Of a stretch of DNA of 64,000 nt, positions 50,063 through 64,000 are shown piece after piece (the stretch's first letter is position 1; each line of letters begins with the position of its first letter). Source of the stretch: Oopsacas minuta (lineage: Eukaryota; Animalia; Porifera). The DNA is taken from positions 248,001 to 312,000 of the forward strand of contig JAKMXF010000277.1 in the NCBI GenBank assembly GCA_024704765.1, in the 5' to 3' direction. The position numbers and the translations under genes were made by a program. The notes under the pieces are model-generated. The model did not search any database. It was not told the DNA's origin and was given only the letters and a program-made list of their open reading frames with translations.

Positions 50063-51430
50063 CTATATCAACAACAACAACAACAAATAGAGGAGCAGGA
50101 GGAATGTAATTGCTTGAGATGTTAGCTTGTTGACACTTGAACATGTATACATATCAGAATCCAGAGTATATCCAGGATTACAAGAACAGCTGTAAGATCC
50201 TACAGTATTGGTGCATATTTGCGAACAGTTAATTGAGTTCAAAGAACATTCATCTATGTCAACACAGGTGTTAGTTTCAGTTTCAATTTGATATCCAGCT
50301 TCAATACATTCACAACCAGAACTGTTAACTACATTGAAACCATTGACACATGGAAAATAATTTTTCGTACAGTTTACATAGTTTGAAACATCAGTAAGGT
50401 TTTTGCCAGCTAAAGTGTTCGGTGTAGAACATTTCCCTGAAATTCCATTACGAAAACTTACAAGACTAACCCAAGAGAAATCGCAATTGCAATCAAATGG
50501 GTTATCTTGAGCATCAAGTGTAACGAGAGATTTCTGCCTCAGAAGGAATTCTCTGTTCAATGATGTTAACTTACAATCCTGTACAGATAATCTTGTTAAT
50601 TTCGGAAATGTGTAAGTGAGTAACAAATCCATATTAATTGAACCGTCAATAACTAGTGAGTGTAATTCATCTAATCCAGTAAAAGCATTAACTTCAAAAG
50701 TGGTATTCACAGAATCCACTCTTAGTTCCAAGTTAATCATATTTACCAGTTTAGAAAACTGATAACTGTTGTAATGACGGAGTCCATGTATAGTGAGCCA
50801 TTCAATACTTAAAGCATTGTCGAATGCATTATCAGCTAATGCAAACCATTCTGCATCATATGTCTGTGTTAAGGTCAGGAATAATAGTTTAGGTTGGTTT
50901 AACATTGATGGAGTGATTGTGATTACAGATGGGAGTTTGAGTGAATGAAATACGATATCATACAGTTCAGTACTGCTTAATACAGGGAATACATCGAAGT
51001 GAATATTAGTAAGATCAATAACAGGCAAGTTTGGGAAATCAGTTAAAAACTCCTCACTCACGTATAGAGGTTGAGATGATGAAATAGTTAAAATACTAAT
51101 ATCCGGTTGAGAATGATTGAATATGATTGAATTATTTCTTCCATCAATTTCTAAGTATAATTCCGTTACTCCACCAGAAATATCCAATATAAGTGTTTTG
51201 TTATCGATTCCATTGATATTAAAGTGAAATGAGAATGCCGCGATACTAATAGTTCTATATGTTGTACACTCGCTGAGTAGGTCACTAGCTATGTTTGCAT
51301 TACTAGTGGAAATGTCACAATATATTGCCGGTCTATAAAATGAACAGCTGATGTTATTGTCAATACAAGGATCTCCATTGATTGATTGACAGAATAATAT
51401 GAGAATTAAGACAGTATTAATCAATAGCAT
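50063..51430 (-). CDS. LRR-EGF-cbEGF protein family B, copy 4, probable GPI/TM anchor
   Basis: Signal peptide from ATG 51430; NPFDCNCDFSWV; cbEGF; hydrophobic tail. Confidence 0.88.
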   Translation of the reverse strand: MLLINTVLILILFCQSINGDPCIDNNISCSFYRPAIYCDISTSNANIASDLLSECTTYRTISIAAFSFHFNINGIDNKTLILDISGGVTELYLEIDGRNNSIIFNHSQPDISILTISSSQPLYVSEEFLTDFPNLPVIDLTNIHFDVFPVLSSTELYDIVFHSLKLPSVITITPSMLNQPKLLFLTLTQTYDAEWFALADNAFDNALSIEWLTIHGLRHYNSYQFSKLVNMINLELRVDSVNTTFEVNAFTGLDELHSLVIDGSINMDLLLTYTFPKLTRLSVQDCKLTSLNREFLLRQKSLVTLDAQDNPFDCNCDFSWVSLVSFRNGISGKCSTPNTLAGKNLTDVSNYVNCTKNYFPCVNGFNVVNSSGCECIEAGYQIETETNTCVDIDECSLNSINCSQICTNTVGSYSCSCNPGYTLDSDMYTCSSVNKLTSQAITFLLLLYLLLLLLI

Positions 51431-52128
51431 TGTTCTTCTTCTGCTCTGGTTAATACACATTTGAATATCTTTAGTTGAGAGAAAGGAATTACAGCTTTGG
51501 ATCCACTCGGTTAACACCCTGACTAAACTTTGGAACCCATTAATGTATAGTATATTAATATTTGGTATATCATTAATATAAAGCCGAAACGTGTGAAAAT
51601 ATTGTTAATTACATGCTAAACACCACTAAAACCAGTAATATTAATTGTATTCTCCGAAAATCTCGGAAACTATCTTCACTTACCATAATACCGACAACAT
51701 GTGGAGACCTAATCTCTAGCATCCTTATTGTACAGATATATAATTGTAATTGGAGATCATAAGCATATACCATAGATCAGAGAATATATTAAAGTAATGC
51801 AGACCAAATATGGACATATAGCTATAGGAATTAAGAATTAATATTAATAAATGAAGAACAGAGCAGTTATAAGAGGTGCTTAAAATTAAGAAGAGATAAA
51901 CAATAATAAATATGCAAATATCTATAAAACAGCCAAACATAAGGAAAAGTGGGTGTGCTTCACAATTACAAGCATGCAGTTTAGTATTATAAAGCTGTTC
52001 AAAGTAATATTAGGGGAGTCGAGTATTCCATTACAGGGGTAGAATCGGGAGTAGGGGTGTTCTAAAGTTGGGGGAGGGACCCATGTGGGATTCTATTCAG
52101 GGGGCCCTTGTGCACTATTCGGTTAGTA

Positions 52129-52705
52129 TTAACACAAGAGGAGACTAAGGAATGCAATTCTTGAGATTTTAGTCAATTGGCAACTCAAGTTCTGAACATG
52201 TAAATATATCAGAATCCAGAGTATATCCAGGATAACAATAACAGCTGTAAGATCCTACAGCATGGTACATATTTGTTGACAGTTATGTGTAGAAATAATA
52301 CATACATCTATGTCAACACAGGTGTTAGTTTCAGTTTCAATCTCATATCCAGCTTCATAACCTTCATTACATTCACAATCAGCACTGTTAACTGAATTCA
52401 AACATTGGTAGATGGAAATGGAGTGTTACTACAGTTTATATAGTTTGAGGAAGCAATAATTTTGTTGCCAGCTCAATTGCTCGGTGTAGAACATGTTCCA
52501 TAAATTATACTACTGTAATCTTTATATCACTAACAAAGGCTAGACTACAATTGCATTCAAGGGGATTAATTTGAACAATAATTGAATTGAGAGATTTCTG
52601 TCTAAGAAAGAAGTTCTTATTCAAAGTTGTTAACCCACAATCCTGTACAGTTATTTCCCTTAGCTTAGGAAATGTGTAATTGATAATATAATCAATAGCA
52701 ATCAC
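52129..52705 (-). pseudogene. LRR-B 3-prime relic (LRRCT-EGF-cbEGF) with stops and frameshifts
   Basis: YTFPKLREITVQDCGL..NPLECNCSLAFV, then a disrupted EGF region. Confidence 0.85.
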
Positions 52706-52941
52706 GATCTCAGATCATGTTTAACGAACAATCGTTATCGTTATCGCCATCGTTAATATAGCGATCAACTAATGCTAGTAAAGGCTTATGCAGTATAGGC
52801 TGACATGCTTTTTGAACGCGCGCTGTCACAATTGGCACATGTTGTCTATAGCTATATACATGCTTTATTAAGAAGAATTTGATGATAAATCTCGTTAATA
52901 CGAATTATTTTAAGTAGGATATATCATATTTTTCTACTTAT

Positions 52942-53055
52942 ATGATATGATGTAATATCCCATCGAATAACTAATGATATGATGTAATATCCCATCGAAT
53001 AACTAATGATATGATGTAATATCCCATCGAATAACTAATGATATGATGTAATATC
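52942..53055 (+). repeat. 32-bp VNTR, about 3.6 copies (ATGATATGATGTAATATCCCATCGAATAACTA)
   Basis: Exact repeats ending about 92 bp upstream of the UBL ATG. Confidence 0.95.
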
Positions 53056-53147
53056 GTATCTAATAGCTGGTAATAGGTCCAGTTATCACATATATATAAC
53101 CTGTAATACTTTACGATGCTCATTAACAATCTATCAGTTTTGCTAAG

Positions 53148-53831
53148 ATGGAGAGTATATTTATTGTTGGACTTGAAGGGAAAGTGAAAACTATTAATAT
53201 CGAAAAAGTTCGAATGAATGTAAGGCATATGTAAGGTTACTATAAAGAATACTGAGTATAGTTATACCCAATTGCAGAGATACCAACTCTGGTGCATTTT
53301 AGCCCCTCAAACTGTAAAATCTCACTGTTTTTGGTTCTTTAACAGTAATTTTACAGAGATCTCAAATCTCACAGATTCTTACTGTCAGTTTGATTTTGTT
53401 TGAGACTGGCATTTATGAAATTGTAAATTGATGGTTGCATATAATGTTCAACAATTTTAATGTATAAAGATGTGTTCTGTATATTAGTCCAGCTTTCATA
53501 ATCTAGAATCCACGCGAAATAAAGCAAAGGTTCTATAATACGCATAATATTTGTTTTCTGATATTGACTGTAGATCAAACGTATAATATCAAATTTCTGT
53601 CTATCCTCACACTGTATTGATCTGTATCTAATTTTATAGAACTACACTATTAAAGAGTTGAAATCTCAAGTATTCATAAGATGTGGGATAGAAGTTGAAG
53701 CTCAGAGACTGATCTACATCAGTAAAGACCTGGAGGTTGAAAGGAATGGCAAAGAGTTAACTCTAAGTGACTATGGAATCCATCGTGATTGTAATATTAT
53801 GCTGGTTGTGAGGTTACCTGGCGGCACATAG
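53148..53831 (+). CDS. Ubiquitin-like modifier copy 1; exons 53148-53219 and 53640-53831, 87 aa ending VRLPGG-T (absent from ORF track)
   Basis: MESIFIVGLEGKVKTINI joined by GTAAGG..TTTTATAG to NYTIKELK..QRLIYISKDLE..LSDYGI..LVVRLPGGT; colinear with the ubiquitin fold. Confidence 0.88.
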
Positions 53832-54558
53832 AGTTTAAATTAAGTGTACGTGAGTGTATTGATACTGTTTTCTATTATTCGTTGTATTTTTTTGTAACTT
53901 TCCTAAGTAATTACGTATATTTATTACTACCACGCAATTCTAAGATTCTCTCCAATACATATTTAGTCAAAATTTCAGACTCAGCTAATGGGGAGTGGCC
54001 TAGCCAATGCTAATCACTCAAATCATTTTGGTAAAACGCTCATTTTTGGGATTGGGTTGGACTCTATCGCAGATATATGTAGTAAGCCCTATTCATAGAG
54101 TATCGATCAAAGGCAGGTGGGTATTTTAAACGGGTTAAAGAGGGTTAAATGATGTGCACTTAACGCGCTTTGGGTGAAACACTAGGCCTTGCCATAAGAA
54201 GACAGCCAAAACCGTTTGTTTCTACCTGTTACTGCTGGGATTGTATAGGATGTGGGATTTACATACATTGTCCAGCAAAGAAATAGAAAAAACAGTTTCG
54301 TATGCTAGTTTACTATGCATTGGTTGCTCAACCCAAAACAACATCCTGCCGACCAAAAAGCCGACCAAGACCTAGGGGGGACATAGATGATAGATCACAA
54401 TATTTTCTTTATCTGCTCGATCGGGAATTAATTCGTAATTAAATAAAATCCATTTGTACTATTCAAATAAGTAAACATTCTATATCTTGATTAGTTTACA
54501 GTATTATTCTAGATATTTTCATATCTAATTCATAGCAAAACGTAATTGATTGTTCGAC

Positions 54559-55383
54559 ATGTGTGCTGCAAAAAACAATGCATTAGAAACACGGAGTGTG
54601 GAGATTTGGAATGTCAGGAAGGGAGGGGAGATGTGTTTTTGGCGAGATGAGACTAGAACAGTTTCATTTAAACATCCGACTAGTGAGTGTTGTACATGCT
54701 TCGATGATGATAGCGGGTTGGAAATGAGTTGTGAACATTACATATGTCCAGATTGTATCCTGAGACAGACATGGGTACAAATCCAACATCTAAAATTTGA
54801 AATAAGTTGTACAAAATGTCCCGCTATCATAAGTATTGAAGATATAATGAAGTTTGGACTGGCAGATTGTGAGGAAAAGCAATTCATAGAAACAGCGATT
54901 TCTGTCAATTTTTGTGAGAGTCAAGACATACAACAGTGTCCGAATTGTCAGAGTTATTGTCAACGAAAGAGATCTGACACAGCTCAGGTACAGTGCACTA
55001 TTTGTGCCAAAAAGTTGAATAAGAGCTTCGAATTTTGCTGGTTTTGTCTGAGAGAATGGAATAATCCAGTGAACTATCAAATCTGCGGCAATTTGAACTG
55101 CAAAAGAGAAGAAATTCAGAAACTACGAAATTCACCCAAAAAAGTATTCGGAGATAAAAAAGGAAAAGCTCTATCTATTCCTATTCTAAGAGCTTGTCCT
55201 AAGTGTTTTACTATAATTGAACATACAGAAGGATGTAACGAAATAACTTGTAAAGTTTGCAAAACAGCATTCTGCTTCATCTGCTTAGCAAGGACAAGAG
55301 AAGGGAGTTTAGTTTGTAGGGGGAGGACTTATACAAACATAACGTGTGTTCCTGCTCCTATTCAAACTAAATTGAGGTCGTAA
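54559..55383 (+). CDS. Compact RBR (RING1-IBR-RING2) E3 ligase copy 1, 274 aa
   Basis: RING1-like CCTC..CEHYICPDC..CTKC; IBR CPNC..CTIC..FCWFC; Rcat CPKC..IEHTEGCNEITCKVCKTAFCFICL. Confidence 0.85.
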   Translation: MCAAKNNALETRSVEIWNVRKGGEMCFWRDETRTVSFKHPTSECCTCFDDDSGLEMSCEHYICPDCILRQTWVQIQHLKFEISCTKCPAIISIEDIMKFGLADCEEKQFIETAISVNFCESQDIQQCPNCQSYCQRKRSDTAQVQCTICAKKLNKSFEFCWFCLREWNNPVNYQICGNLNCKREEIQKLRNSPKKVFGDKKGKALSIPILRACPKCFTIIEHTEGCNEITCKVCKTAFCFICLARTREGSLVCRGRTYTNITCVPAPIQTKLRS

Positions 55384-55826
55384 ATTTGAACTTTACATGT
55401 GTTTTGCTTTATTTAGCTTACTAGAATTGAGATTATTTGTTTTGGTTAGTTTTGTAAAACTTCATAGTTTGTTATTATTTTAAAAGAAGTTCACGATCAA
55501 TATTAGCCGATTGAAAGGGACATTATTGCAAAATGGTTTTAACTGTTCCAGCTAATTTCAGTCTGTATTGTACTTGTAAATCAGATATGTATTAAATTTC
55601 ATGTTTACTTTACTATGCTTTACTAGTGTATTAATTAATTAATGTCAACCCATATATCCTTTTGAGATATTTACAATATGTTGTTGTTGCTTGCTACAAA
55701 TCATACTTGTGCATAAAGAATTGAAATCGATTATATTTTATGTACATTAATATCGCTTTTGTTGCAAAGTACTTGTAGTTATACGTAATTTCCTCTACGC
55801 AGTTCAGTCACGGACATTTATGCTCA

Positions 55827-57850
55827 ATGGCTAATGATGAACGTAGACACCAATATTTTGTGTCTAAAGCAACGAAGCGACTAAAACGAGATCTGAAATT
55901 AATCCTCACTGATCCTATTCCAGCTATCGATGTAGCACCGAATGAAGACGATATTCTAGACTGGCATTTCGCTATACACGGTAAGAATGACACTCCATAC
56001 GAAAACGGTGTATACCATGGTAAGCTTGTGTTCCCTCCCAATTTTCCTTTTGGTCCACCTAAAATATTGTTCCTGACTCAAACGGGAGATTTGAAGTGAA
56101 CAAGAGGATTCGTTTCAGTCTGAGCGATTTCCACCCTGAAGAATGGAAGCCCGCATATTCAGTGACAGCTGTACTACGTGGTGTTTATGACTTTATGCAT
56201 GAATCGACTGAAACTATTGGAAGCATTAATTCTAGTGTAAGTGCTAGAAAGCAATTAGCTCTTGACAGTAGAGAATATAATCTCAAAAATGATACATTTT
56301 GTAGACTGTTTCCTAATATGATTCAAGATGATATGGGAAATGATGTAGATTCAGTTAGTCAAGACGAATCGAATCAAGGTAACAACGAGGTTGATTCGAG
56401 TGAGATTCCAGGGAGGATTGAAATGAATATAACACTAAAGACATATGCCACAACAAATCCTATTCCAGATCTTGGTACCAAAGTTCTACAGCATGGAACA
56501 ACTGATACAATTGATTCTCATCCTTCTACTCCTCAAAATCAAGATATTCTAGAAACAATTAATCCAAATTCTATTCCAGATCCTCAAAAACAGGAGGAAA
56601 CTAGAATCATAAATTCCCCAGAAAACGAGATATCCAATCCTCCCCTGAACCCCGAGACTCCAAAGTCAGAAGATGGAATCAGATTCACAACTATATTTCC
56701 ACCACCATTTAAGTCAGATATTAGCTCCGCCATTGAGCTTCAAGCAAGACAAACTCCTCCAATAAATGAACCAAATTCTCCAACACAGGATCAAGCTAAT
56801 ATTAATATTCACATCATAAACGAAATAAATGAAGTTCTGATTCCTCCAGAAAGATGTAATCCAAATTCTATTCTGAATCCTCAAAATCAAGAGGAAGCTA
56901 GAATCATAAATTCCCCAGAAAACGAGATATCCCGTCCTCCTCTAAACCCCGAGACTCCAGAGTCAGAAGATGGAATCAGATTCACAACTATATTTCCACC
57001 ACCATTTAAGTCAGATATTAGATCCACCATTGAGCTTCATGCAAGACAAACTCCTCCAATAAATGAAGATCTGATTCCTCTAGAAAGATGTAATTCTCCC
57101 TCAGTAAATAATGTGATGCCTCCAATGATAGACGAGAATATTCCTGCAGATAATGTAATCACTATACATACAGATACCGAGCTAAATGAAACTCTTACAA
57201 ATGATACTCCTACACAACCACCAGTTGGAATACCAATACCTCCTCCAGAAATGCCTTATAATACAGTTACATTACGAGAAGATTCTAATGCAGATCTCAA
57301 TAGCTCCTTAATAGCTACAAGTTCAGGCAGTCCTATAGGTATTCCTGTACCTCAGCCTTCGATAAAGCTCCCAGCGCAAGAGCCTGTTCGCCGTGCTCGT
57401 CCATTCAAAATATCACCAATATCACCTATACATTCTAGTTTATCACGAGAAAGGAATCCAAACTATAATCAACTTCCAGCATACGAAACACCACCACCCT
57501 ATTCACCTAAACAAATTTCCAATACCTCTATACAGCCGAATCCTTTAATGAATTATGCCATTGTTAATTCCCAGTATAATAATGCTGTTGTAATAGCGGA
57601 TTCAGCTCGAGTACCAAACAGAAAGAATCCTGCCAAAAGGCCAAGATCCATCCCCTTTATGTACAGAACGCAAAGTAGAAATCTTGGAGACATTGAAAAA
57701 GGAACTTTGCGGCAGGAGAGAAGTTACGAACTGCCAGAGATTAATCACCACGAAATTAACTGCTATTATATTGCATTACTTGTAATAGTAATCTTATCTG
57801 CTATTGGGCTTTTATATTTGTTTGCTCAACTGAAAATAAGCTTGAAGTAA
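55827..57850 (+). pseudogene. UBE2J2: UBE2J/Ubc6-type tail-anchored E2 copy 1; frameshift at 56079 and catalytic Cys-to-Arg
   Basis: ATKRLKRD..WHFAIHG..TPYENGVYHGKL. ACTCAAAC here vs ACTCCAAAC in copy 2. Active-site codon is CGT (56111-56113). Long Pro-rich linker and C-terminal TM helix. Confidence 0.8.
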
Positions 57851-58046
57851 TTGAGTGACTTCTCTTCTAGTTATATTAGAATGAATTTTAGAATATCTTT
57901 AGCGGAATATAGAAGATTTACACAATTTTTACAAAATACACAAATTCAGATCCTTAATACAAAATACATTACACATAACTATCATGAATAAATTCTTACA
58001 TCTCATTATAAATGTGAGTGCTAACTTTAAATTCTACGATGGCCTA

Positions 58047-58620
58047 ATCAAGTGTAACGAGAGATTTCTGTCTCAGAAGGAATTCTCTATTCAATAATGT
58101 TAACCTACAATCCTGTACAGATAATCTTGTTAATTTCGGAAATGTGTAAGTGACTAACAAATCCATATTAATTGAACCGTCAATAACTAGTGAGTGTAAT
58201 TCGTCTAATCCAGTAAAAGCATTAACTTCAAAAGTGGTATTCACAGAATCTACTATTAGTTCTAAATTAATCATATTTAACAGTTTAGAAAACTGATAAC
58301 TGTTGTAATGACGGAGTCCATGTATAGTGAGCCATTCAATACTTAAAGCATTGTCGAATGCATTATCAGCTAATGCAAACCATTCTGCATCATATGTCTG
58401 TGTTAAGGTCAGGAATAATAGTTTAGGTTGGTTTAACATTGATGGAGTGATTGTGATTACAGATGGGAGTTTGAGTGAATGAAATACGATATCATACAGT
58501 TCAGTACTGCTTAATACAGGGAATACATCGAAGTGAATATTAGTAAGATCAATAACAGGCAAGTTTGGGAAATCAGTTAAAATTCCTCACTCAGGTATAG
58601 AGGTTGAGATGATGAAATAG
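58047..58620 (-). pseudogene. Internal fragment of LRR-B4
   Basis: Near-identical to 50513-51085. The 5-prime end was removed by a deletion at GTTAA microhomology; the 3-prime end is cut by the duplication breakpoint. Confidence 0.9.
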
Positions 58621-59144
58621 TTAATTACATGCTAAACACCACTAAATCCAGAAATATTAATTGTATTCTCCGAACATCTCGGAAACTATCTTCACTCACC
58701 ATAATACCGACAACATGTGGAGACCTAATCTCTAGCATCCTTATTGTACAGATATATAATTGTAATTGGAGATCATAAGCATATACCATAGATCAGAGAA
58801 TATATTAAAGTAATGCAGACCAAATATGGACATATAGCTATAGGAATTAAGAATTAATATTAATAAATGAAGAACAGAGCAGTTATAAGAGGTGCTTAAA
58901 ATTAAGAAGAGATAAACAATAATAAATATGCAAATATCTATAAAACAGCCAAACATAAGGAAAAATGGGTGTGCTTTACAATTACAAGTATGCAGTTTAG
59001 TATTATAAAGCTATTCAAAGTAATATTAGGGGAGTCGAGTATTCCATTACAGGGGTAGAATCGGGAGTAGGGGTGTTCTAAAGTTGGGGAGGGACCCCAT
59101 GTGGGATTCCATTCAGAGGGGCCCGGTGCACTATTCAGTTAGTA

Positions 59145-59722
59145 TTAACACAAGAGGAGAATAAAGAATACAATTCCTTGAGATTTTAGTCAATTGGCAA
59201 CTCAAGTTCTGAACATGTAAATATATCAGAATCCAGAGTATATCCAGGATAACAATAACAGCTGTAAGATCCTACAGCATGGTACATATTTGTTGACAGT
59301 TATGTGTAGAAATAATACATACATCTATGTCAACACAGGTGTTAGTTTCAGTTTCAATCTCATATCCAGCTTCATAACCTTCATTACATTCACAATCAGC
59401 ACTGTTAACTGAATTCAAACATTGGTAGATGGAAATGGAGTGTTACTACAGTTTATATAGTTTGAGGAAGCAATAATTTTGTTGCCAGCTCAATTGCTCG
59501 GTGTAGAACATGTTCCATAAATTATACTACTGTAATCTTTATATCACTAACAAAGGCTAGACTACAATTGCATTCAAGGGGATTAATTTGAACAATAATT
59601 GAATTGAGAGATTTCTGTCTAAGAAAGAAGTTCTTATTCAAAGTTGTTAACCCACAATCCTGTACAGTTATTTCCCTTAGCTTAGGAAATGTGTAATTGA
59701 TAATATAATCAATAGCAATCAC
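59145..59722 (-). pseudogene. LRR-B 3-prime relic, duplicate of 52129-52705
   Basis: Near-identical to the unit 1 copy. Confidence 0.85.
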
Positions 59723-59958
59723 GATCTCAGATCATGTTTAACGAACAATCGTTATCGTTATCGCCATCGTTAATATAGCGATCAACTAATGCTAGTAAAG
59801 GCTTATGCAGTATAGGCTGACATGCTTTTTGAACGCGCGCTGTCACAATTGGCACATGTTGTCTATAGCTATATACATGCTTTATTAAGAAGAATTTGAT
59901 GATAAATCTCGTTAATACGAATTATTTTAAGTAGGATATATCATATTTTTCTACTTAT

Positions 59959-60136
59959 ATGATATGATGTAATATCCCATCGAATAACTAATGATATGAT
60001 GTAATATCCCATCGAATAACTAATGATATGATGTAATATCCCATCGAATAACTAATGATATGATGTAATATCCCATCGAATAACTAATGATATGATGTAA
60101 TATCCCATCGAATAACTAATGATATGATGTAATATC
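59959..60136 (+). repeat. 32-bp VNTR, about 5.6 copies
   Basis: Same unit as 52942, with two extra copies. Confidence 0.95.
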
Positions 60137-60228
60137 GTATCTAATAGCTGGTAATAGGTCCAGTTATCACATATATATAACCTGTAATACTTTACGATGC
60201 TCATTAACAATCTATCAGTTTTGCTAAG

Positions 60229-60856
60229 ATGGAGAGTATATTTATTGTTGGACTTGAAGGGAAAGTGAAAACTATTAATATCGAAAAAGTTCGAATGAAT
60301 GTAAGGCATATGTAAGGTTACTATATAGAATACTGAGTATAGTTATACCCAATTGCAGAGATACCAACTCTCGTGCATTTTAGCCGCTCAAACTGAAAAT
60401 CTCACTGTTTTTGGTTCCTTAACAGTAATTTTTAGCAGAGATGTCAAATCTCACAGATTCTTACTGTCTGTTTGGCTTTTGTTTGAGGCTATAGATTGGA
60501 ATTTATGAAATTGTAAATGTATGATTGCATATAATGTTCAACAATTTTAATATATTAAAATGTGTTCTGTATATTAGTCCAGCTTTCATAACCTAGAATC
60601 CATGGGGAATTTAGCGAAGGTCTGTCTATTTTCGAACTGTATTGATCTGTATCTAATTTTATAGAACTACACTATTAAAGAGTTGAAATCTCAAGTATTC
60701 ATAATATGTGGGATAGAAGTTGATGCTCAGAGACTGATCTACACCACTAAAGACCTGGAGGTTCAAAGGAATGGCAAAGAGTTAACTTTAAGTGACTATG
60801 GAATCCATGGTAATTGTAATATTATGCTGGTTGTGAGGCTACCTGGCGACACATAG
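60229..60856 (+). CDS. Ubiquitin-like modifier copy 2; exons 60229-60300 and 60665-60856; ends RLPGD-T (di-Gly lost)
   Basis: Same splice sites as copy 1; GGC changed to GAC at 60848-60850. Confidence 0.85.
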
Positions 60857-61200
60857 AGTTGAATTTACATGTACGTGAGTGTTTGAGACTGTTTTATAAC
60901 ATTTACTCTAATTTCTATTATTCACTAACTTCCTTAGTAATTACGTGTGGTATATTCCATTATTTTGAGATATTCTCAAAAATTGTACATATATTGTATA
61001 TGATGTATTTTGTCAAAATATAAACTCGGCCGATAGAAAGCCTTGCCCAAACACATTTGCATTATTTTATGGACTGGGTTGGAATTAATTATTGCAATTA
61101 AGCTATATCTACCATATACCCACATACGATATCAGGATCCTAGACAACCTTTCATAAGTGGGGCTTAAGAAATATAGTGGAGGGGATTATTTCTTATTGG

Positions 61201-61283
61201 CAGGGTTGCCGTAGGAATTCCCATAGAATTTCCTGTGAGAATGGGATAGGAATGAGGATTGAATTCCGTTCCCATGACAACCG
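61201..61283. mobile_element. Small MITE (CAGGGTTGCC..TTCCCATGACAACC); related sequence near 39600-39700
   Basis: Imperfect TIRs with internal GGGAAT repeats; absent from unit 1. Confidence 0.5.
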
Positions 61284-61337
61284 TACATATTAGCCAATGG
61301 CCATATAGGTAAATTAATAGTAGAAAAAGGGCTTAAG

Positions 61338-62023
61338 CAGGGGCGTCGGAAGCTGGTATTTTCATGGGAGGATTTAATGATGTGAATGCATGAATAATAA
61401 CACTCAATTTAGTAATCTAGATAGTCTAAATTAGAGCTTTGGCAATCTCCCAAACTTACTTCACGGTGTTAAGTATTTATGGACATTTGTAATTTTTGAA
61501 AATATAAACTGTAGTATATTCATTGCTTATATATTACTAGTGTAGTTGGTAATCAGCAGCCAATGAAACAAATGGAAAATTACTTTTTAACAAGCTTTGT
61601 TGTTAGTAGTAAATTATTACTATAAATGTGAGGTGCCAATTAACAACTAGATAATATGAAGATATAACTCCAGCAGGCTTCAACCAATGACTGGATGTGT
61701 GAGGTTTTTGTTGAAAAACTTCCCAACTGGCAACAACATGATAATATGAAAATAACTATAAACAAACTATGAAGGGGTGAGATAATACCCTCAAGGGGAT
61801 AACCCCCATCGTAGTTGGTTTATAATTATTTTCAAACAAGTATTGAGGATGCCGATCCGGGGTGTAAACTATTGTACATGATATCCCTCCTAAATTGGCA
61901 GAATGTTCTAATAAATTCGAAAATAATTAAATACTCACTCACAATTATAGGGGGGATTATCCCCCTCTGTCTAAATCATGGGGGGGATGAGTACCCCCAT
62001 CCCCCTCACTTCCGACGCCCCTA
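61338..62023. mobile_element. Non-autonomous hAT element, 686 bp
   Basis: TIR CAGGGGCGTCGGAAG / CTTCCGACGCCCCTA and perfect 8-bp TSD GGCTTAAG; absent from unit 1. Confidence 0.85.
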
Positions 62024-62142
62024 GGCTTAAGCCCCCAAGCCCCCTCCCTTGTCTACGGCCTTGGATATATATATATTAAACTAAGATATTTTCCTCTATC
62101 ATCTGGATATTTGTAAATTGAATTCATAGAAAATATTTCCTG

Positions 62143-62964
62143 ATGTGTGCTGCAAAAGAAAGTGCATTAGACACACGTATGGTAAAGATCTGAGATGTGA
62201 GGAAGGCAGGAGATATGTATTTTATCAGAGACGAGACCAGAACTGTTTCATTTACCCATCCGACTGGTGAATGTTGTGTCTGCTATGACGATAGTGGATT
62301 AAAAATGCGCTGTGGACATTACATATGTCCAGATGATATCCTACTCAATACGTGGGAACAAATCCAACATCTAAAATTTGAAGTAAGTTGTCCAAGCTGC
62401 CCTGCTATCATAAGTATTGAAGATATTATGAAATTTGGACTGCCAGATTGCGAGGAAAAGCAATTCATAGAAGCAGCGATTTCCGTCAATTTCTGTGAGA
62501 GTCAAGACATACAACAGTGCCCGAATTGTCAGAGTTATTGTCAACGAAAGAAAACTGACACAGCTCAGGTACAGTGCACTATTTGTACCAAAAATATGAA
62601 AAAGAGTTTCGAATTTTGCTGGTTTTGTCTGAGAGAATGGAATAACGCAGCTAACTATCAAATTTGTGGCAATTTGAACTGCAAAAGAGAAGAAATTCAG
62701 AAACTACGAAATTCACCCAAAAAAGTATTCCGAGATGATGGAGGAAAAGTTCTATCTATTCCTATTCTAAGAGCATGTCCTAAGTGTTTTACTATAATTG
62801 AACACACAAAGGGATGTAACGAAATGACTTGTAAAGTTTGCAAAACAGCATTCTGCTTCATCTGCTTAGCAAAGACAGAAGAAGGGAGTTTAGTTTGCAG
62901 TGGGAGGACTTACACAGCCATAACATGTGTCGCTGCTCCTATTCAAACTAAATTGAGGTCGTAA
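62143..62964 (+). pseudogene. Compact RBR E3 copy 2 with a nonsense codon at position 17 (re-initiation at ATG 62215 possible)
   Basis: TGA at 62191-62193 replaces TGG of copy 1; RING1 reads CPDD instead of CPDC; IBR and Rcat intact. Confidence 0.75.
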
Positions 62965-63406
62965 ATTTGAACTTTACATGTGTTTTGCTTTATTTAGCTT
63001 ACTAGAATTGAGATTATTTGTTTTGGTTAGTTTTGTAAAACTTCATAGTTTGTTATTATTTTAAAAGAAGTTCACGATCAATATTAGCCGATTGAAAGGG
63101 ACATTATTGCAAAATGGTTTTAACTGTTCCAGCTAATTTCAGGCTGTATTGTACTTTTAAATTAGATATGTATTAAATTTCATGTTTACTTTACTATGCT
63201 TTACTAGTGTATTAATTAATTAATGTCAACCCATATATCCTTTTGAGATATTTACAATATGTTGTTGTTTCCGCTACAAATCATACTTGTGCATAAGAGA
63301 ATTGAAATCGATTATATTTTATGTATATTAATATAGCTTTTTGTTGCAGAGTACTTGTAGCTATAGGTAATTTCCTCTACGTGGTTCAGTCACGGACATA
63401 TGCTCA

Positions 63407-64000
63407 ATGGCTGATGATGAACGTAGACACCAATATTTTCTGTCTCGAGCAACGAAGCGACTGAAACGAGATCTGAAATTAATCCTCACTGATCCTATTC
63501 CAGCTATCGATGTAGCACCGAATGAAGACGATATTCTAGACTGGCATTTCGCTATACACGGTAAGAATGACACTCCATACGAAAACGGTGTATACCATGG
63601 TAAGCTCGTGTTCCCTCCCAATTTTCCTTTTGGTCCACCTAAAATATTGTTCCTGACTCCAAACGGGAGATTTGAAGTGAACAAGAGGATTTGTTTCAGT
63701 CTGAGCGATTTCCACCCTGAAGAATGGAAGCCCGCATATTCAGTGACAGCTGTACTACGTGGTGTTTATGACTTTATGCATGAATCGACTGAAACTATTG
63801 GAAGCATTAATTCTAGTGTAAGTGCTAGAAAGCAATTAGCTCTTGACAGTAGAGAATATAATCTCAAAAATGATACATTTTGTAGACTGTTTCCTAATAT
63901 GATTCAAGATGATATGGGAAATGATGTAGATTCAGTTAGTCAAGACGAATCGAATCAAGGTAACAACGAGGTTGATTCGAGTGAGATTCCAGGGAGGATT
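63407..64000 (+). CDS. UBE2J2: UBE2J/Ubc6-type E2 copy 2, UBC domain intact, runs off the window
   Basis: Open for 198 codons; FLTPNGRFEVNKRICFSLSDFHPEEW with Cys TGT at 63692-63694. Confidence 0.88.
   Translation, partial: MADDERRHQYFLSRATKRLKRDLKLILTDPIPAIDVAPNEDDILDWHFAIHGKNDTPYENGVYHGKLVFPPNFPFGPPKILFLTPNGRFEVNKRICFSLSDFHPEEWKPAYSVTAVLRGVYDFMHESTETIGSINSSVSARKQLALDSREYNLKNDTFCRLFPNMIQDDMGNDVDSVSQDESNQGNNEVDSSEIPGRI

Follow-up and report, generated by a model that had tools for sequence, protein, structure and literature searches.

Why should the two copies of a duplicated gene cassette each be damaged, and in different genes? The question is raised by a 64,000-nucleotide stretch of the genome of the glass sponge Oopsacas minuta (GenBank assembly GCA_024704765.1, contig JAKMXF010000277.1, positions 248,001 to 312,000 of the forward strand; hereafter the window), in which two tandem units each carry three plus-strand genes: a two-exon gene for a ubiquitin-like protein (UBL; 87 residues), a single-exon gene for an RBR-type ubiquitin ligase (274 residues) and a single-exon gene for a UBE2J2-like E2 of the ER, tail-anchored type. 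A preliminary description of the locus had proposed that lesions are distributed over the units such that one sound copy of each component is left, and that this reflects reciprocal degeneration under selection for 1:1:1 dosage. Our analysis makes it fairly probable that the pair arose by genuine tandem duplication of a UBL-RBR-E2 cassette of glass sponges, one of a tandemly arrayed family that evolves by birth-and-death turnover with patchy gene conversion. The complementary pattern of damage is best accounted for as ordinary duplicate-gene turnover, which says little about dosage and is no proof of dosage selection.

The units and their genes are listed here. Positions beyond 64000 are extended coordinates taken from the sequence L001, which is equivalent to 52215-72964 of the window; its first 11,786 bases match the window exactly and it gives 9 kb beyond the window end.

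50513-58046, no strand assigned: tandem unit 1, 7.5 kb, from a blastn self-comparison of the window and a repeat search.
58047 to about 66050 (extended; the window ends at 64000), no strand assigned: tandem unit 2, from the self-comparison and L001.
53148-53219, plus strand: UBL1 exon 1, 24 codons, same sequence as UBL2 exon 1, followed by the donor GTAAGG.
53640-53831, plus strand: UBL1 exon 2, intact, with a Gly-Gly-Thr-stop end; Pfam ubiquitin match, E = 8e-9.
54559-55383, plus strand: RBR1, an open reading frame of 274 residues with the Rcat cysteine; Pfam IBR match; structure model with a mean predicted local distance difference test score (pLDDT) of 80.
55827-57850, plus strand: E2-1, a disabled UBE2J2-like E2; Pfam UQ_con matches its first 85 residues only.
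60229-60300, plus strand: UBL2 exon 1, same sequence as UBL1 exon 1; a spliced contig of run X4 joins 60300 to 60665 (GT..AG).
60665-60856, plus strand: UBL2 exon 2, with a Gly-Asp-Thr-stop end; covered without differences by contigs of runs X1, X2 and X3.
62143-62964, plus strand: RBR2, codon 17 being TGA (62191-62193) and codon 25 an in-frame ATG (62215-62217); otherwise open, and no conserved cysteine is missing; Pfam IBR match.
From 63407, plus strand: E2-2, first 198 codons in the window (to 64000), ending at 65431 (extended); an uninterrupted open reading frame of 674 residues.

Besides UBL1, RBR1 and E2-1, unit 1 contains part of a minus-strand LRR-EGF gene and an older LRR-EGF pseudogene fragment. 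Its identity to unit 2 is uneven, being 97.6-98.4% in the LRR part, 92.8-94.5% around UBL exon 2, 77-93% in the RBR gene and 98.6% in the E2 gene; the roughly 300 nt surrounding UBL exon 1 are 100% identical across the units and exon 2 differs by 5%. About 415 bp unique to unit 2 precede 65873-66050, where homology to 57876-58053 picks up again. The spacers between the UBL and RBR genes (0.7 kb and 1.3 kb) have no similarity to each other or to the rest of the 73 kb, and tblastn searches of the window returned these two units only. The same unevenness is evident when the coding sequences are compared copy against copy by the Nei-Gojobori method, which gave the following values for synonymous divergence (dS), nonsynonymous divergence (dN) and their ratio (omega).

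RBR, whole gene: dS 0.31, omega 0.31, dN 0.095.
RBR, first 90 codons: dS 0.67, omega 0.27.
RBR, remainder: dS 0.19, omega 0.31.
UBL: dS 0.04, omega 1.1.
E2, whole gene: dS 0.01, omega 1.6.
E2, UBC core: dS 0.024, omega 0.48.
E2, linker and tail: dS 0.006, omega 3.0.

A 30-fold spread of dS within one 7.5-kb unit goes beyond what selection would produce and therefore points to patchy gene conversion, or else to an older duplication with homogenised flanks. Because dS is far lower for the E2 pair than for the RBR pair, the defect in E2-1 would be very recent relative to the split of the RBR genes.

Both lesions that had been described in E2-1 are present and derived. One C is missing after 56078, at the place where E2-2 has CC (63658-63659), and the shifted frame reaches a TGA at 56097-56099; the codon for the catalytic Cys96 is CGT (56111-56113; Arg) in E2-1 compared with TGT (63692-63694) in E2-2. 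The intactness of E2-2, first seen over the part that lies within the window, extends beyond 64000, where the frame stays open for its full 674 codons to 65431. E2-2 retains Cys96 and a C-terminal hydrophobic anchor, matches Pfam UQ_con at 1e-20, and its core aligns with the structure of human UBE2J2 (2f4w; residues 14-168) at E = 1.8e-52 and with yeast Ubc6 at about 1e-46. It thus has the characters of a UBE2J2/Ubc6-type E2, including the UBC core and the TPNGRF...C active-site context, which E2-1 has forfeited through the frameshift and Arg96. It differs from UBE2J2 and Ubc6 in its length of 674 residues, in the repeat-containing linker of about 480 residues between core and anchor, and in that its gene adjoins UBL and RBR genes. 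All four nonsynonymous differences in the UBC core are derived in E2-1 and none in E2-2. Only 1.4% from E2-2, yet frameshifted and without its catalytic Cys, E2-1 is, as its sequence reads, a young pseudogene. The suggestion that the Arg form might act as a decoy fails because the frameshift precedes the Arg codon.

Within the Pro/Asn/Ser-rich linker of the E2 genes there is a 297-bp internal tandem repeat (92% identical; 56548-56770 and 56845-57067 in E2-1, 64129-64648 extended in E2-2), and over the linker the two genes are separated by 20 nonsynonymous and 2 synonymous differences. The recorded gene model of E2-1 (L001 3613-5636; 648 residues) appears to skip the frameshift by means of an intron. 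We rejected this NCBI model, since the matching joint is not listed in the read contigs (described below) on the near-identical E2-2.

The two UBL genes, whose introns have GT..AG splice sites, differ at the end that matters for conjugation. UBL1 reads GGC GGC ACA TAG and UBL2 reads GGC GAC ACA TAG (codon 60848-60850, altered base 60849), as had been noted previously. The change is derived in UBL2, since Gly-Gly is present in all eight other family UBLs examined; all seven that were followed past Gly-Gly continue for one residue before the stop. UBL1 therefore has the predicted make-up of a conjugatable ubiquitin-like modifier, namely a beta-grasp fold with Gly-Gly and a removable extension, and UBL2, ending in GD-T, does not. 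There are five nonsynonymous and no synonymous derived changes on the UBL2 branch and two of each on the UBL1 branch; a further nonsynonymous difference, R38I, has no assignable polarity, so the count for UBL2 is five to six. UBL2 has lost the Gly-Gly used for conjugation and is, on the best account, a relaxed or diverging copy. It may have some role as a non-conjugatable protein.

Both RBR genes encode the RING1-IBR-Rcat arrangement with its catalytic cysteine, with Pfam IBR/IBR_1 matches above cut-off and matches to ARIH1 and ARIH2, the structure matches being weak (down to E = 1e-5). The IBR and Rcat cysteines are invariant across 29 aligned sequences, RBR1 and RBR2 included. The proteins differ from Ariadne-type ligases in their size of about 274 residues, in having no Ariadne domain, and in an atypical RING1 in which the family usually carries Asp in place of the cysteine at zinc ligand 6. 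This last feature bears directly on the state of RBR2, which had been considered dead on the strength of two changes, TGG to TGA at codon 17 and CPDC to CPDD. The first is real and derived, RBR1 having TGG at this codon. The second was read in the wrong direction: in the 29-member alignment CPDD is the consensus, with Asp in 24 of the 25 closer relatives (a fraction of 0.96) and in all four polarising outgroups, and Cys is found only in RBR1 and in a single other protein among the 29. It is the Cys of RBR1 that is derived, through two base changes (GAT to TGT; the Asp codon of RBR2 lies at 62335-62337).

Indeed, RBR1 departs from the family at five sites that are conserved in at least 80% of its members (F26C, G42S, G59E, D66C and P102A), all of them private and mostly radical, and the last four, together with a one-codon insertion, are derived changes in RING1. 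RBR2 departs at four such sites and more mildly. In a maximum-likelihood tree the two are sisters (100/99 support) with branch lengths of 0.13 for RBR1 and 0.067 for RBR2. When changes were polarised with four outgroups, the RBR1 branch had 22 nonsynonymous to 12 synonymous changes (p=0.023) and the RBR2 branch 11 to 14 (p=6e-5), both below the neutral expectation, such that RBR2 has undergone half the protein change of its sister. If the damaged copy of each pair were evolving neutrally and the survivor were constrained, the damaged copy should have the excess of protein change; the E2 UBC domain and the UBL (5:0 versus 2:2) behave in this way, and the RBR pair does the opposite. On these counts, which are small, RBR2 has been under purifying selection for most of its history, and RBR1 is the faster-evolving copy, chiefly in RING1. 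As to whether RBR1 might have been altered by ectopic conversion from a closer donor paralogue, none was found in the protein collection, where the next match is 72% identical and falls outside the RBR1-RBR2 clade.

Downstream of the TGA, the ATG at codon 25 is in frame and the NCBI model for RBR2 (249 residues) starts there. The 24 residues that such a product lacks are present in all aligned homologues, and the AlphaFold model of RBR1 has a helix at residues 16-25, so the Met25 product of RBR2 would be without a structured N-terminal element.

Support in the reads was assessed with Logan contigs from four runs (X1-X4) aligned to 57750-63749, the state of E2-1 being read from variants on E2-2. 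The GD codon of UBL2 and the TGA of RBR2 are covered without differences by contigs of X1, X2 and X3. X1 shows the deletion form of the E2, as a gap at 63659, and X2, X3 and X4 have the form without the deletion. A T/C difference at 63692, the Cys96 site, is not among the contig differences listed, and the sole contig with the deletion shows no other difference; this is probably a path switch between near-identical copies, the two sites being 33 nt apart. Since the libraries come from different adults (PMC10280926), the deleted, undeleted and unit-specific forms recur across individuals.

Run X4 resembles RNA: one of its contigs connects 60300 to 60665 across GT..AG ends, which removes exactly the UBL intron, and the intergenic 60950-61349 is left uncovered. 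UBL2-specific sequence is covered, no difference being listed, and an RBR2-specific contig (62213-62550) departs from RBR2 at 3 sites, compared with the dozens expected of RBR1. There is no cover over 62150-62212, which includes the old ATG and the TGA of RBR2, and a 5' variant of the E2-1 type, with AT inserted at 63397, is present at a depth of 182 of 824. The damaged genes do not look silent, and RBR2 is probably transcribed. The death of RBR2 as first described is therefore not convincing. Because its branch is the more constrained, because the Rcat cysteine and Met25 are kept, and because an RBR2-specific contig occurs in the RNA-like run, either the gene was lost very recently or it encodes a ligase shortened at its N-terminus.

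We can now return to the pattern of damage. UBL1, RBR1 and E2-2 are free of lesions, as was claimed, and four of the five reported lesions are present (the E2-1 deletion, the loss of Cys96 in E2-1, the GD end of UBL2 and the TGA of RBR2), the fifth, CPDD, being ancestral. By our own arithmetic, three random hits on six genes would strike three different genes with a probability of 8/20 = 0.4, and if one copy of each gene is required then six out of eight possible end states have the surviving copies spread over both units, as observed. Chance alone would thus give complementary damage in 40% of cases, which makes it a weak argument for selection. Nor is 1:1:1 a rule of the family, because on another O. 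minuta contig (JAKMXF010000029.1; L006/L008) two UBL-RBR pairs flank a single E2 of 242 residues, a ratio of 2:2:1. Selection on these genes is seen better in the RBR omega of 0.31, the conserved E2 core and the conserved Gly-Gly. On our reading, the complementary pattern would have arisen by random loss of redundant copies while at least one copy of each gene was needed, and the present working set would probably comprise UBL1, E2-2 and RBR1, possibly with an N-terminally shortened RBR2.

The most serious competitor is the original proposal in full, in which each of E2-1, UBL2 and RBR2 is a null copy and reciprocal degeneration, with selection on all three genes, has brought the locus back to one working UBL:RBR:E2 set and a 1:1:1 dosage. 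A lesion-free copy of each gene, with the whole of E2-2 now included, is what it predicts; Gly-Gly is kept in all other family UBLs, the omega of the RBR pair indicates constraint, and RBR2 has lost 24 residues that every homologue retains and that in part form the modelled helix. However, CPDD is ancestral, the supposedly dead RBR2 has the more constrained branch and appears to be transcribed, UBL2 and E2-1 are also among the X4 contigs, and the chance expectation and the 2:2:1 locus given above speak against it too. We regard this explanation as improbable.

A second possibility is that unit 2 has been neofunctionalised, with RBR2 translated from Met25 and serving as a ligase devoid of the N-terminal helix, and with UBL2-GD as a non-conjugatable, binding-only regulator or decoy, both alongside E2-2. 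The X4 contig begins at 62213, just upstream of the Met25 ATG, and leaves 62150-62212 uncovered, UBL2-specific sequence is covered, the RBR2 branch is strongly constrained, the five to six nonsynonymous and zero synonymous derived changes of UBL2 would fit positive selection as well, and the spacer upstream of RBR2 has been remodelled by a high-copy repeat. On the other hand, the end of a contig is not the start of a transcript, the UBL2 counts are too few to tell positive from relaxed selection, and no other family member lacks either Gly-Gly or the N-terminal 24 residues, which leaves this a quite unlikely reading. We would give as little weight to its extension to both units, in which the repeat insertion moved the start of RBR2 to Met25, UBL2-GD serves as a non-conjugatable regulator, the RING1 of RBR1 is adapting through the Asp-to-Cys change at the zinc ligand, and two diverging modules share one E2.

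Several points weigh against our preferred reading of a duplicated cassette undergoing birth-and-death turnover. Gene conversion is deduced from uneven dS and not from an analysis of tracts. RBR1 and RBR2 do not differ significantly in rate (Fisher p=0.18; relative rate p=0.08), their branch counts are small, and the outgroups used for parsimony polarisation are only 61-72% identical. That X4 is RNA was deduced from its contigs, with no record saying so, and contigs show neither transcript starts nor transcript levels. Finally, all four runs are from one study, and no listed contig bridges the 58046/58047 junction, such that the tandem order rests on the published PacBio and Illumina hybrid assembly (PMC10280926). 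This single study and unbridged junction, together with a word depth in unit-2-specific contigs about half that of contigs identical in both units (which fits paralogues and haplotypes alike), are what might be expected of uncollapsed haplotypes, a mis-assembly or sequencing errors, but such an artefact is unlikely given that both forms occur in several libraries from different adults of an isolated cave population in which low heterozygosity is expected (PMC10280926), that the GD and TGA substitutions and the E2-1 deletion recur in short-read contigs, that the units diverge by anything from 0 to over 20%, with spacers that are not homologous and with an RBR dS of 0.31, far beyond allelic variation, that unit 2 begins inside a truncated LRR gene, and that tandem arrays of the family occur in other sponge assemblies.

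The family context is consistent with the duplicated cassette being one of many. There are 28 close RBR homologues (E < 1e-50), many of them arrayed, with at least five in O. minuta and a dozen on one 1.7-Mb contig (other sponge-derived assembly), and UBL-then-RBR pairs are found in every locus examined. Tandem arrays of the cassette family are also present in other sponges' assemblies. In one such sponge-derived assembly (L004; ENA ERZ25766962; 3153-4652 and 8553-14564), an RBR gene beside a 124-nt E2 remnant is followed by a complete UBL-RBR-E2 unit; the two RBR genes are 89% identical in DNA and the one beside the remnant is intact. At another locus (L005) the RBR gene is split into three frame-shifted pieces. 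Partial decay of units is therefore recurrent in the family.

Reciprocal gene loss after duplication and the birth-and-death evolution of tandem families are established concepts, and the O. minuta pair resembles both in that the units lose different members while each function keeps at least one copy, pseudogenes occur at related loci (L004 and L005), and conversion homogenises parts of the units. It is unlike classic reciprocal loss in that a three-gene enzymatic cassette is affected within one tandem pair, as opposed to whole-genome duplicates, in that the loss of RBR2 is doubtful, and in that the placement of the damage does not differ statistically from chance. As a case of complementary loss it is tidy and unsurprising, and alone is no demonstration of dosage selection. 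The duplicated pair is of more use as a natural experiment, in which an E2 copy and the Gly-Gly of one UBL tolerate loss and both RBRs stay constrained; a single E2 is probably able to serve two or more UBL-RBR pairs.

The cassette itself, in which a gene for a Gly-Gly-ended UBL stands beside its own RBR ligase and a UBE2J2-like E2, has expanded in glass sponges, and is a promising candidate for a conjugation system private to an animal of an early-branching lineage. Our literature search found no description of it. Parkin is a protein with both UBL and RBR parts, and more distant relatives of the sponge ligases, P0029 among them, likewise have a UBL fused in front of the RBR, through the Gly-Gly; the sponge UBL differs from this in being a separate gene with a GG-X end. 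We considered whether the UBL and RBR might be one spliced gene, as in a 399-residue Oopsacas model (LOD99_11374; P0018), and rejected this, since at that locus (L007) the genome reads RLPGGN and the X4 contigs are without a UBL-to-RBR joint. The model, which lies on O. minuta contig JAKMXF010000180.1 (L007 987-5944), fuses the UBL to the RBR by skipping the Gly-Gly end and is probably a merged gene model.

One further feature marks the junction between the units.

58047-58580, minus strand: truncated LRR-EGF copy at the left end of unit 2, without the equivalents of 50063-50512 and 51092-51596.

An older broken LRR-EGF fragment lies on the minus strand in both units (52184-52702 and 59201-59719) and shares about 77% identity with the 3' portion of the gene at 50063-51517. 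The stretch of about 415 bp that is confined to unit 2 lies 3' of E2-2 (65457-65873 extended; L001 13243-13659), and an X2 contig has a matching break at 57876. The spacer between UBL2 and RBR2 has a word depth of 200-1950 over 61350-62150, compared with about 50 for adjacent unique sequence, and many loose ends; this segment, either a high-copy repeat or a fragment of a transposon, is missing from the unit 1 spacer and from the rest of the 73 kb. Directly upstream of UBL exon 1 there is an array of 32-bp tandem repeats, with four copies in unit 1 (52910-53107) and six in unit 2 (59927-60188).

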